From assembly GCA_904063045.1 (NCBI GenBank), contig CAJFCJ010000003.1, positions 434,001-498,000 on the forward strand: a stretch of 64,000 nucleotides of DNA. Reading direction: 5' to 3'. A program made the translations under genes and the position numbers. The notes under the pieces were generated by a model, which saw only the letters and a program-made list of their open reading frames with translations, made no database searches and was not told the origin of the DNA. Source of the stretch: Dimorphilus gyrociliatus (taxonomy: Eukaryota > Animalia > Annelida). Shown here piece after piece: positions 21,042 through 36,000 of the stretch (positions are counted from its first letter, which is position 1; every line of letters begins with the position of its first letter).

Positions 21042-24000
21042 TTAGACGAACCATTCTTTAACATCTTTCTTACTTTTTGTGGCTGTTGGTGCGACTACAA
21101 CTTGAGCATTTGGAGCAGTGCTTAGAACTGCTGTCTCTGTCGGCGGAGGTTTTGTGGCCGCTTGTTGGTAGGCTATATAATTTTTACTTTCATCGACTTT
21201 ATATGAACCGTCGTCTCTCGCTCGGTACTTGTAAAGTACATAAGTAACGATGAGCAAAAGAACCAAGACACCGCATGCTACTCCTATAATTAGTCCGAGA
21301 TTTAAAGAAAACTTCCCCGTTGATATCTCATTAGGCGGAGGTTCGGATGCTGGGTTAACAGAAACTGTAGTTTTGCGATTAAAAGGTTCATCATCTGTCG
21401 GTTCAACTGATAATATAGATGGTTCGTCTGAAGTGCGTGAATTTGTTGCCAAGTCAATGCCTTCCTTAGTTGTTGTACTCTTCCTGACCGGTGATACAGT
21501 CTTTGAGGTTGTTCTTGTTCTCTTTGTCGTCGGCACTGTAGAGTATACTTTTCCTATTGTTGTTCTTTTAGATACCGGCATTGAGGTTGAACTAACGGTT
21601 GCTGTCGTTGTGTATTTTGGTCGGTTAGTCGACTTTATAGAGGCGCTGCCCTCGTAATCCTCATCATCCGTTTCAATTGTTTCTGTAAGCGTTTTTGGCG
21701 TCGAAACTGGTCTGCTACTTGGCAAATGAGGAATAATAAAGGAAAAATGTAAAATAAATGCAACGTTGCTTTTATCTATAATGCAATCTTCTCTTTTTCA
21801 TCTTACCTGCTAGGAATGACGACCTTGGTAATCGGTTTAGGGCGGAAGACGGGCGTTATAAGGGCGTCTCTGGGAGTGGGCGTAACATTCGAACAGTCGT
21901 CCTCATCATCGCTTTGACAGCCAGAACCAGCGCCAGCCCCGGATGTAATTAGTTCTTCGGAGGGACTAGAGCCGGACTGCAAAATAATTGCTTATATTAC
22001 GATTGCCATCAGCATTAATATAAACACTGCAATAATATTAACAGCAGCATCAGATATGAATATAATTACACCGAGGACTTATTGCTACGATTATTAGAAA
22101 TTTTTCTCGTCAATTTACTTCTACAATATGTTGTCGATAGACGGAGCAATAGGCAGAGACAAGCGATTGAGGCCTACTCCTTAAAAATAGAAGGAGGAGC
22201 AAAAAGTGAGGCTAACAAATGCGTACAACTGCAAAAATCGATATATTAAGTGCAGGTTATGGAATACGATTGACACTAATTATGTCTTGGAACAAATTCT
22301 CCCGCACGTAATTAGCTTTGCACCGTGTCTCCATTCAACTTATTGATCAAAAGTATCGCACAAGGGAGGAGATAGTACATATACCTGATAAATCAGGATA
22401 GGTTCCATTAAAGGAAACGCTAGAGGGCACCAAAAAGCAACGGCATGCAATTACTGATTAACATGGAGATGAGAAGATAGAGACGATTTTCTAATTGATA
22501 GTAAGCGATTAAAGATTTAACATCCTATATTTCTGTCAACCGTATTGGATTTATGCGGTAGTTCTTTCATTATGCAACTGCAAAATTATATACCCAACCT
22601 TAAGCTTATTGGGCCATAACTCTCGCAACAGAACTACAGAGGGCGCACAGTTATTATACTTAATTCCACCCCCTTTCTCCTCTCTTTCTAAGACGTATTA
22701 AAGAATGACAGATGAGTTACCACACGAGAACCTATACCTATATCGATTACAAAACTGTAAACTGATAGCACATATACATATTAGTATATAATTCTACATA
22801 TAAGCATCTATATCGGCTAAGCTAAAATAGGTGGCGCGCAAATAAACTAACATATTCTCTGTTCAATTCATCAATTAAATTAAGAATATAAGCCCGAACT
22901 GGCTTTTAATTGATTAAGGGGTCGAAAGAGCAAACGAAAACATTCGCTTTACAAACAAGAATAAACAAGACAACCGACATTTCTCCATACAAAAGCAGGA
23001 TCGAAGGAGAATGAGAAAACGATAGAGAGAGAAAACAAGGGTGAGAGGAGGATATTCATGACCAATAGGTGGCACTCGTCTTTAAACGATGCTATGTTAC
23101 TCACGGAAAATAATAAGCAAGGAGATTGTTTCAATAGTAGAATATAGAAAATTATGAGATAGGATGAAAAGATATTCATAATTCGTTCATAATTTTCTCC
23201 TTCCGTAAGGCTACGAGTCAATCTTTTTATCCAAGGAGCGTTACTCGAGTGACGGCAGGCAAAGTGACGCTTTTTTTTCTAAATGCAACGCCACCAAGTG
23301 GTGAAGATTGGTATTGCTTGGCCTAATGCATATGGCTTTTTCGATTTTAGCATTTAATGTCACGAAAGGGTCGGATTTCCAGTTTTTCTAGATTTGTCCT
23401 TGAAAAGCAAAAAAAGGTAGCCAAGGGAAAAAACGTGCATAAAAAAATTGGAGCAACGTTGGCTGACGAAGGAGTAATTCATAGTTCCCAAAAAAAGACG
23501 ATCTGTACGTGGAGAGGGAGTGAAACAATCCATATTCTCGGCGTGAAACGGATTTTCTATTTCACGCCTGGAAAATTCAGTGGCAAACAAATTTCTTTCT
23601 TTGTACTTAAAAAGTGACGCAGCTCTTTTTGGGTCGGGCGTAAAACAAAGTCCAATTATTGAAATCAATAAATAAATAATTGAACATAATTCCATAAGTT
23701 CCCAATGTGTCTTCTAGTTTGTCGAAGAACGTGCGTAAGTGTTTGTAGTTGCTATTACCACTTTGCCCTTTTCATTTCATCTCTAATACTGTTTGTAAAT
23801 AATGAATGAGGATACCTACAACCTATAACATGAAATATTTAAAAAGCCTTCAAGTTTTAAACTCTCAATAGACTGGCTAATAATGCTCGCAATAGTCATT
23901 CAACAGCCACCCCTCCCTGAAAAGTGGAAAATATGATGCAAATTTTCCGCCCATTCAACACGACAAACCGCAAACGTGACAAGCACGGATAAATAGTTCG

Positions 24001-33000: not shown

Positions 33001-36000
33001 TCTAAAATTTGCTGATTGCTGCGACAGCCGCGCCTGAAAAGGTCTCGGGGATGAGTTTTGGGAATTAGATGGGCTGTCCCTAGTGCGGGAATTTCCACCT
33101 TCCGGTAGACGACACACACAGAACGACCGAGTTAAACAAGTTCTAACTTCCCCCGGAAACGGAGATAAACGTCGTCGACAAGCAAAACTAAAGTCTTCGG
33201 GGAGCCCAGGTGCATTCAGTCAGACTAACGTCTTTTCACAATTTCCGCTCTTGTCACCGCCCAAGCAAGAGCGTCGTTCGAACGTTGATAACGTGCTTGG
33301 CATGTTTTTTTCTCCTTCTCTTATTCCTCTTTACCAACTATTTCTTGTCGAGAAAAATGCCACTATAGATAACTTTAATTGGATTGGGGGGTCAAAGAAA
33401 ATCAAAAGAGGAGAAGAGGAATTCAGGCCAGTAAGAACGCCTAGGCTAGACGGTCTTGATTACTAAGGGATTAAACGCAGATCCCTTAGATAATAGAAAA
33501 AGTACAGTTTGCGGGACGCCACAAAAAAATTATTCGATATAGAATTCCATACTTCAGGCCATTGTCTGTCAGATAAGACGTTTCAGGCAGCAACCAGTCA
33601 AACGCGTTTATCATATTAGTGACGCCCAGCAAACGTTAAATGATTGAACAAAGTTAAGTGGCGGCACACTCGTTTTCGTTTTTCCTACAAACTAGTCAGT
33701 TGGTTTGTCAATACTACTTTTATCTTACTTCATTGGCTTACGCTCTAACACCAGATGGCGATTGAGCTGAGAGTACTTACGTTTATCGCAGTTTTTTCCT
33801 TTGAATGACGTGGCCCGACAATCACAGGTGTAACTGTCCCAGCTTCTTTTACAAATACCACCATTCCAGCACGGGGAAGAAGCACACGAACTGGCAGTGA
33901 TACTTTCACAGCCTCTCCTAACATCTATAAAGAGTAAAGTAACGTAATAAGAAGATAAATTTACATAAGAAACTAACCGTAAAGTGTTTGTTTTTTCTGA
34001 CTGTTCCATAAATCAACAACCCTGTCGTTTAACTCAACTCTTCGAATACAACCCTGAAAGCCGAATCCTAATTTTCCGGACCAGAATTCTTTTGGGTAAT
34101 CAGAACTCTGATTTAAAGCACCTAAATACAAACTACCGGAAGCTAAATTTAATTCTGCACTCTTTCGATCTGAAGAATATCTAATAAATTCGTCTTGGTC
34201 CAAGTAAACTTTACCAGTTTCTCCATTATGCTCCAAACGAACGTCATGCCATAATCCATCATTTACCGGTTTCTCGCTGATCTTTGCCTTTATCAATAAT
34301 AATACGCAATTAAGATTCTACTAAGAGAAGGTTGTTAAATATTTATTCTCTATTTACTTTCAACGTGCCCCCTCCGTAATTAATAATTAGATATAATTGG
34401 CTCTCAAAGACCTCGAGACCAAAAAAATCCTTCCTCCCTCGACCCATCACTAATTGACTGCTGTTTTGTACAGTTCGAAACTCCAAGTGTAATTTACTGC
34501 CTGGAATTGCCAGCCAAGGTTCTAGAATAACCGAGCTAGACTGGGAGGCGAAGAAAATGGCTTGTGAACAACCCTTAAAGCTAACTCCTCCTTCAATGTG
34601 AAAAAGCTGGTTCTCTTTTTTAGCCCATCGTAAAATATCTATTTTCATCGAATCTGCCTGATAGCCGACCTTTTTCAAGCACCCAGTAAAATTCTTAATA
34701 CTTTTCCCGCTGCCGTCCCAAATAGCGTCATCTCCAGCGCCTCCTAGATAGAGAAGAGAACTTCGAAGGCTGCTAAAGTTTCCAGTTATTGAGGTAGATG
34801 GCGTAGTGTGTTCTTTATCGACAGTCACTTTTACCTAGGGAAGAAGGCTAATTACTTACAATTGAATCTGTAAGTAGAAGATGCTTTTAAAAGGAAGAGT
34901 GTTTTTTTTTGTATGAGAAAAAATGGGTAAAAAATAACAAGCAAACAATAAAGGAATGGAGCACATGCAAAAAGATTGCCCTGTACGATAATGATGACTC
35001 TTATTCCGCATGCTTAGGAACCTTACCTCACAGATAGCTCGATTTATTAGCTGTAACATAATGGTGGATTTCGTGTTACACAATAAAATTGATATTACGC
35101 AAGATGAATTTTTTAATATAATTATAGATATATATTAAAGTACACTTATACGCATTTATTCAAATTTCACCTTCAAATTTCAAATATTTTCTTTCAGTGA
35201 GTATCACTCGTATACAAACTAACCTGCCTTGTTTTCCGCGCTACAAACACACGATGCCACTTGTTATCGTGGAAGTGGGCGGAAGGGGATGCGCGAATGG
35301 ATTTTCTTGGAGAGGCCACCAATTTGACGTCGACGATAATTTTACCTCGTCGCAAATATATCGTCAAGTGTTCGTTTTCAGCTCCTGTAGAAGAGCGTGT
35401 AAGAAAAAATATAAGATAATTATGTTAGCTGCTACCAATTAGCGAAAGATTTCGTTTCTCTCGTTTTAATTAGTAATATGCTATACGTGGATATTATTTT
35501 ATTAATAACTTTTGATTTTCTTCTCTTTTTTCGGAGCTTTAGTACATTACTCGTATCTTACCGGTGTAAAGTAGAAGGCCGTTTCCGTTTAGAGTCCTAA
35601 AATAGAACGTCACTTGGTCGTTCCAGGAGGAGATGGAGTGCTTCTTGCGTGCAGACAAATCGTAGCTAATAAACTGTCGACCGTCGAAGGTCGCTTCCAG
35701 TTTCTCGTCCAGTTGCTCTACAAAGCCCACAAGTAAGAAAAAGGGTAAAGCTAAATTGGCGAAAGGAAAGTGGATTGGTCAAGATTTTTATCGCCTTGGG
35801 AGCAATTCTACGGTCTTTGTTATGTGAAAAGCGCTTTGCATTGATCACGTGGACAATATGTCCTGAAGGTTTCTTTATAAGATTACACAAATTAGAGCAC
35901 ATTTTTTGCTTTTGTGTTACCTGGCAGAATTTCACTTATGTTTAATTGCGTAAGTACTTTGATATCTCCCCTTACAAATGCTTACATATTTAATGTAATT

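Follow-up and report, generated by a model that had tools for sequence, protein, structure and literature searches.

Vertebrate neurexins are alternatively spliced at splice site 2 (SS2), where a short in-frame insert of 8 or 15 amino acids enters the LNS2 domain. In mouse Nrxn1 the SS2A form adds residues 379-386, directly after Q378, and the SS2AB form adds residues 379-393 (Wilson et al. 2019); the Nrxn1 inserts are HSGIGHAM and HSGIGHAMVNKLHCS (Sugita et al. 2001). The annelid Dimorphilus gyrociliatus has a single alpha-neurexin gene, and here we describe a 24-nucleotide (nt) exon, encoding LINRAICE, at its corresponding position. The gene lies on the minus strand of a 64,000-nt stretch of contig CAJFCJ010000003.1 (positions 434,001 to 498,000), which we call the window and whose own numbering is used throughout. 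Alternative splicing at SS2, known in vertebrates, is thereby extended to protostomes by way of a conserved microexon: the site is very probably alternatively spliced in an annelid, and the same microexon is found in molluscs, a nemertean, arthropods and probably a brachiopod.

Short alternative inserts in laminin-G domains also occur at neurexin splice site 4 (SS4), in LNS6, and at the agrin y/z sites. These lie in rim loops and retune ligand binding, and they differ from SS2 in domain and in loop. The SS4 exon has been reported as a chordate invention that arose de novo (PMC3933685), whereas the SS2 microexon is widespread in protostomes. In vertebrates an SS2 insert prevents LNS2 from binding dystroglycan, makes its binding to neurexophilin stronger and allows it to bind Vstm2 (Wilson et al. 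2019, among other papers). In the structure of the SS2A+ form, HAM extends strand beta9 while HSGIG is a disordered loop, and H384 and M386 face outward and reach across beta10 to contact Nxph1 (Wilson et al. 2019).

Extensive alternative splicing of neurexins was described as exclusive to vertebrates in a 2025 review (PMC12665717, citing Tabuchi and Sudhof 2002), and a 2011 review of invertebrates wrote that vertebrates “acquired” the splice sites. Our full-text literature search turned up no account of an SS2 insert or microexon for any invertebrate neurexin. Wilson et al. 2019 show Aplysia, ant and fly sequences in one of their alignment figures, where the extra residues are visible and undiscussed. 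The insert data were already in public isoform records, apparently uninterpreted.

The Dimorphilus microexon and its transcripts

Contigs from three RNA runs cover the exon and its neighbors. Those of run X5, from the same species, are 100% identical to the window, and they are of complementary DNA (cDNA) type because four other introns of the stretch are absent from them. Runs X2 and X4, labeled as other, related organisms, match the window at ~93-94% identity. In the direction of transcription the region is composed as follows.

35561-35720, minus strand: LNS2 exon encoding the N-terminal portion of the domain, the second exon upstream of the microexon (contig pieces and the GT..AG joint 35383>35561 in X5, X2 and X4)
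35224-35383, minus strand: upstream LNS2 exon, ending ...HDNKWHRVFVARKTRQ, its last codon being the SS2 insertion point (translation, Pfam, 3QCW alignment and contig pieces 35224-35383)
35051-35223, minus strand: intron of 173 nt, phase 0, gttagt...ttacag, from the upstream exon to the microexon (joint 35050>35224, “skips 173”, in X5, X2 and X4)
35027-35050, minus strand: cassette microexon of 24 nt, CTAATAAATCGAGCTATCTGTGAG, encoding LINRAICE, phase 0-0, at neurexin SS2 (inclusion joints in three runs, skip joint in X5, protein CAD5112830.1)
34835-35026, minus strand: intron of 192 nt, phase 0, gtaagg...ccctag, from the microexon to the downstream exon (joint 34830>35023, cut +4; retained in one X5 contig)
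34357-34834, minus strand: downstream exon, starting VKVTVDK, with the C-terminal half of LNS2 and the start of LNS3 (Pfam, Nrxn1-alpha match and contig pieces 34357-34830/34836)

Both exons beside the microexon matched the Pfam family Laminin_G_2, the upstream one at profile positions 16-65 and the downstream one at positions 68-123, and the SS2 intron splits the profile at 65/68. When the Protein Data Bank was searched with phmmer, the top matches of the flanking exons were to Nrxn1-alpha, with the best-scoring stretch on LNS2 residues. The upstream exon aligned to residues 274-328 of 3QCW, and the downstream exon matched LNS2-LNS3 with an E value of 4.5e-16. The last residue of the upstream exon, Q59, was aligned to Q328 of 3QCW; this is the Q of ..VTRNLRQ, Q378 in Wilson's mouse Nrxn1 numbering, directly after which SS2A is inserted. 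The Dimorphilus insert shares an alignment column with the vertebrate SS2 inserts, after the Q of R-x-x-R-Q and before V-x-[IV]-x-V-D. Judged by these alignments, the insertion point of LINRAICE, between ...RKTRQ and VKVTVD..., is the exact residue position of vertebrate SS2. The earlier note on this DNA had placed the intron at that point, and the structural alignment bears it out.

The upstream exon ends in ...AAGGCAG at 35224 (..VFVARKTRQ) and is followed by gttagt. The microexon, 35050-35027, is preceded by ttatgttacAG and followed by GTaagg, and the downstream exon (VKVTVDK..) begins at 34834 after cttccctAG. Both introns beside the microexon are in phase 0. Splice-flanked in-frame open reading frames (ORFs) of 24, 27 or 30 nt number 575 on the two strands of the 64-kb window, with ~1-2 expected per 389-nt intron, and this SS2 intron contains 5 such candidates of 9-60 nt. 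By itself a splice-flanked in-frame ORF is not beyond chance, and it is the RNA that decides whether the exon is real.

All three junctions that the earlier note had named as a check on the cassette exon (35224-35050, 35027-34834 and the skip between the outer exons) are present in X5. The inclusion joints are 35050>35224 and 34830>35023 (cut +4, giving 34834/35027), and the skip joint is 34832>35222 (cut +2, giving 34834/35224), with the 4 ambiguous letters expected for CAG/GTA. All three joints have GT..AG ends on the minus strand. The multi-exon contigs of X2 and X4 also include the microexon. Since this locus occurs only once in the 77.9-Mb assembly, a retrocopy is not the source of the spliced forms. 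The interior of the 173-nt intron is uncovered: the 35120-35190 bin is empty in all runs, with slight depth in the 35049-35119 bin at the microexon-proximal end. That 35050-35027 is a real exon, and one that is used, is close to certain.

One X5 contig (34807-35052) follows the genome without a break through the 192-nt downstream intron, and its read-through translation leads to a stop codon. It indicates intron retention or pre-mRNA.

One possibility is that the segment has neither function nor orthologs, being a stretch of intron that became exonic recently and is spliced in frame as noise. The one or two splice-flanked ORFs expected by chance in an intron of this length would agree with such an origin. 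It is contradicted, however, by two findings: the main transcript assembled for each of three organism labels includes the exon, and at least five phyla have counterparts in this intron with matching phase (see below). In addition, the microexon shows 0 differences in 28 nt between X5 and X2/X4 where the flanking exons diverge by ~6%, which alone is not significant (P about 0.17). We regard splicing noise as scarcely credible.

Another possibility is that the exon is effectively constitutive in Dimorphilus and there is no regulated switch, the skip junction being either an occasional splicing error or a product of the assembly. Only the inclusion form was seen among the contigs of X2 and X4; the skip form was found in one short contig of one run, flagged “between: not known”, with a shorter side of 26 letters; and the homologous insert of Drosophila is fused to its upstream exon and looks constitutive. 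On the other hand, the skip contig has the geometry of a direct CAG/GTA junction in a k=31 graph, as the shorter flank of 26 letters and the 4 ambiguous letters add up to k-1. Its word depth of 84.5 is similar to the 65-70 of the inclusion junction contigs in X5, contig depth giving no isoform ratios. Forms with and without the insert exist in molluscs, and the lack of a skip form in X2 and X4 says little because assemblies drop minor variants. Constitutive inclusion is accordingly an improbable explanation, and we consider it highly probable that the microexon is genuinely alternative in Dimorphilus.

An exhaustive HMMER search gave a single close match, the D. gyrociliatus protein CAD5112830.1 (P0001, DgyrCDS2041). 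It contains LINRAICE spliced to VKVTVDK, so the microexon and the downstream exon are already connected in the public annotation. The remaining homologs were <=40% identical to the Dimorphilus downstream exon, which suggests that this neurexin is a fast-evolving protein.

Counterparts in other protostomes

We aligned the LNS2 regions of ~110 neurexins, among which the RefSeq isoforms are computed models and count as supporting evidence rather than proof. Many protostomes carry 8-10 extra residues at the SS2 column, most of them with a penultimate Cys. The following inserts were found in that column.

Gastropods (Haliotis asinina X4, Biomphalaria, Nucella, Candidula, Lymnaea): LTRD[KRQE]GVC[YFSA]
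Aplysia cloned neurexin (ApNRX G0WLR9): LPRDAGVCF
Pectinids: LTRQNG[YL]TG
Mercenaria: LTYGRTFCD
Magallana X7: LTVGNAKYI
The nemertean Lineus: LTRQHGFLD
Spider and horseshoe crabs: IT..T[SG]FCH
Insects (Nrx-1): IS..TSFCR
The barnacle Pollicipes: LVDSGHSVCY
Three transcript-derived proteins: LAKDRGLCV, LVEDHGICY and ISGTSSFCD

In molluscs, as in Dimorphilus, the insert is alternative. Isoform X4 of Haliotis asinina has it (LTRDKGVCF) while X3 and X5 do not, and in Magallana the annotated X7 has it while the transcript-derived P0002 of the same cluster does not. Close relatives differ as well: Pecten and Argopecten have the insert and Mizuhopecten lacks it, and Mercenaria has it and Ruditapes lacks it.

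The genomic loci gave two arrangements. In Candidula (L004, 7154-7180, 27 nt) and in Pollicipes (L002, 39100-39129, 30 nt) the insert is a free-standing phase 0-0 microexon. In Drosophila grimshawi, unlike in Dimorphilus, it is fused to the upstream exon (L003, 2770-2796) and looks constitutive because it is contiguous with that exon. The stretch L003:2734-2796 reads through into ISSITSFCR, the upstream intron having been lost.

A lineage-weighted profile of the protostome inserts was used to score every splice-flanked ORF in the loci of two species with insert-less models. In the brachiopod Lingula anatina, where the earlier note had proposed a search of the same intron, LARNFAIAD gave the top score of 500 candidates in the locus and lies inside the SS2 intron. 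In Owenia fusiformis, LIVDKGIGY (L001:7622-7648), also in the SS2 intron, ranked 4/287 and matches the mollusc core D-K-G-[IV]-x-Y. Both predicted microexons are unannotated and have CAG or TAG acceptors, a CTG first codon and GTAAGT donors. A filter for a penultimate Cys had picked out MYKASFTGCF and VIQTDKCI in Owenia; these were dropped, as profile scoring favored LIVDKGIGY with its GTAAGT donor. LARNFAIAD occurs twice in Lingula (L005:13066-13092 and 2086-2112), the N-terminal part of the gene being duplicated or split into two models in the assembly.

Across these sequences the protostome SS2 microexon is, as aligned here, usually 27 nt long and in phase 0-0, with Leu or Ile as first codon, usually a hydrophobic-Cys-x end and a strong GTAAG donor. 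Dimorphilus shares the intron, the phase, a length within 24-30 nt, the Leu at position 1, the hydrophobic-Cys-x end in the form I-C-E, and the GTAAG donor. Its exon differs in being one codon shorter, and its middle, N-R-A, diverges from the L-T-R-D-x-G core. LINRAICE ranked 17/575 on the profile in the window (about p 0.03). Because this match is modest, the case for orthology is built mainly on where the exon lies and on its phase, on the Leu at its start and I-C-x at its end, and on phylogenetic bracketing by Owenia, molluscs and the brachiopod.

Homology of the SS2 microexon across protostomes is well supported, and LINRAICE is likely a diverged ortholog of it. The explanation as a whole, that 35050-35027 is an alternatively included cassette microexon and an ortholog of the protostome-wide SS2 microexon, we likewise hold with good confidence. 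Several observations weigh against it: the skip form is a single short contig from one run, and X2 and X4 show inclusion only; LINRAICE resembles the protostome consensus only modestly, with 8 residues rather than 9; the microexons of Owenia and Lingula are predicted from genomic sequence; the structural model presented below is of a mollusc homolog rather than the Dimorphilus protein; and ligand effects are known for vertebrates only. If the explanation is correct, at least part of the neurexin splice code would date to the protostome ancestor or earlier, and the ancestral role of SS2 could be studied in the small nervous systems of Dimorphilus, Platynereis and Aplysia.

Relation to the vertebrate inserts

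The annelid and vertebrate sites are alike in domain, in residue position, in adding a short insert in frame (8 residues in Dimorphilus, 8 or 15 in vertebrates) and in the expression of isoforms both with and without it. LINRAICE also has a penultimate Cys, as does the Nrxn1 SS2B insert. In contrast, the Dimorphilus insert is one free-standing cassette microexon with its own two introns, while the vertebrate insert is a two-step A/AB insert that is reportedly made by way of alternative donor and acceptor sites. Nor does LINRAICE have significant sequence similarity to either vertebrate insert.

The earlier note had aligned INRAICE with VNKLHCS and taken this as a hint that the SS2 exon is homologous across bilaterians. 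We found that alignment to be not above chance. Both vertebrate inserts scored negative on the protostome profile (HSGIGHAM -8.2, MVNKLHCS -3.1), and the sole feature that LINRAICE shares with HSGIGHAM or VNKLHCS is the penultimate Cys. Though suggestive, this Cys is lacking in Nrxn2 (VNKLHYL) and in one form from fish (VNKQNLT), and in other protostome inserts it is replaced: by Ala in Lingula, Gly in Owenia, Thr in pectinids and Leu in Lineus. In the MAFFT alignment Ala385 of SS2A falls in the Cys column. The wider claim holds for protostomes, where positional and sequence counterparts occur in molluscs, a nemertean and arthropods, including the Candidula and Pollicipes microexons; the vertebrate link is unproven.

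Our sample of deuterostome invertebrates consisted of echinoderms, a hemichordate and two ascidians. Within it, no SS2 insert was found in 9 Asterias, 9 Clavelina and 2 Ptychodera isoforms, or in single proteins of S. purpuratus, Holothuria and Antedon. The Asterias SS2 intron (806 nt) contained no candidate resembling the protostome or the vertebrate insert family. In the ascidian Phallusia mammillata, the neurexin-3-like protein P0016 has 10 extra residues at the SS2 column, KGDAVGPSST, between ..NRSLSE and VRVIVDD. This sequence is Cys-less and resembles neither the protostome nor the vertebrate inserts.

These data may be read as independent origins, in which the protostome microexon and vertebrate SS2A/B came into being on separate occasions within an ancient, conserved phase-0 intron, at a surface hairpin where insertions are tolerated, and the penultimate Cys is common to both because an extended strand structurally favors a small residue there. 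The negative profile scores, the Cys-less B-inserts of Nrxn2 and fish, the replacement of the Cys within protostomes, Ala385 in the Cys column, the lack of an insert in the deuterostomes just listed and of a matching candidate in the 806-nt intron are all in its favor, as is the conservation of the honeybee intron at SS2, which was already known (Biswas et al. 2008). On the other side, intron, phase, approximate size and alternative use are the same in the two clades; the penultimate Cys of Nrxn1 SS2B is the commonest protostome state; the insert could have been lost in Ambulacraria and most tunicates; and the deuterostome sample is without amphioxus and lamprey. We lean slightly towards independent origins, a reading that concerns the vertebrate link only and is compatible with orthology among protostomes.

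Common descent is therefore no likelier than separate insertion into an old phase-0 intron, and homology of the Dimorphilus insert to the vertebrate insert is rather doubtful. Common descent in its fullest form would have the SS2 cassette already alternatively spliced in the last common bilaterian ancestor, with SS2B (VNKLHCS) as a remnant, loss in echinoderms, hemichordates and most tunicates, and an unpaired Cys with a function of its own. This is unlikely, though if true it would make SS2 the oldest neurexin splice switch. Alternative splicing at SS2 is in any case older than the vertebrates, at least as far as protostomes are concerned, and is no vertebrate invention.

Predicted structure, candidate ligands and gene context

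We predicted the fold of LNS2 from Haliotis isoform X4 with AlphaFold2, using a 33-sequence alignment. In the model (mean predicted local distance difference test score, pLDDT, 88) the LTRDK residues of the insert form a loop and GVCF forms a strand continuous with ISVEV, resembling HAM in 6PNQ, which extends the beta-strand that follows. The best structural matches of the model were the Nrxn1-alpha LNS2 entries 2H0B and 6PNQ; agrin and SS4-containing beta-neurexin structures were weaker matches.

By analogy, the ..ICE end of the Dimorphilus insert may lengthen the beta-strand that continues as VKVTV, as HAM extends beta9 in vertebrate SS2A, while its N-terminal residues would make the hairpin loop at the domain's edge longer. 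Longer strand and loop together could reshape the ligand-binding edge, and the reshaped edge would then switch partner binding of LNS2 between isoforms, possibly under neuron-type regulation. The neurexophilins, vertebrate partners tuned by SS2, are absent from invertebrates (Wilson et al. 2019; PMC12665717), and dystroglycan is for that reason the candidate partner here. A switch in the binding of an older LNS2 partner, dystroglycan being the candidate, is what we infer to be the most likely role of the insert. If so, ligands older than the neurexophilins, above all dystroglycan, would be the likely original targets of the switch.

We looked in the LNS2 alignment for a second Cys that covaries with the insert Cys and found only the canonical pair; the insert therefore adds an unpaired Cys to LNS2, and it is the lack of a covarying partner that would point to a function of its own. 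Under bilaterian ancestry, that function could be as a redox-sensitive thiol or in a disulfide to a ligand. From the alternation of residues along the strand beside the H384/M386 contacts, the penultimate residue would point the opposite way to H384 and M386, and this could impose a structural constraint on the Cys. The canonical disulfide Cys of LNS2 (alignment columns 181 and 218) are themselves replaced in two sampled echinoderms, by N/T in S. purpuratus and N/E in Asterias.

The microexon sits in a compact alpha-neurexin gene that runs on the minus strand from ~38816 to 21042 in the window. Its architecture was read from the minus-strand ORF list and Pfam, with some of the exons also compared with RNA. 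A signal-peptide exon (38816-38511) is followed by EGF-like exons and several LamG exons, and the last exon encodes a Syndecan-type transmembrane and cytoplasmic domain. In public annotation the neurexin gene appears to be split or truncated. The model DgyrCDS2041 (34343-35083, minus strand) is a fragment of 330 amino acids whose start ATG lies inside the intron just upstream of the microexon, giving MLQ+LINRAICE, and its last ~60 residues (from ..QTLYGEAVKV) seem to fall outside the neurexin reading frame. At the PDZ-binding end (21042-21725, minus strand) the Dimorphilus tail reads KKDVKEWFV, a Tyr-to-Phe change compared to the ..KEWYV of all other neurexins retrieved.

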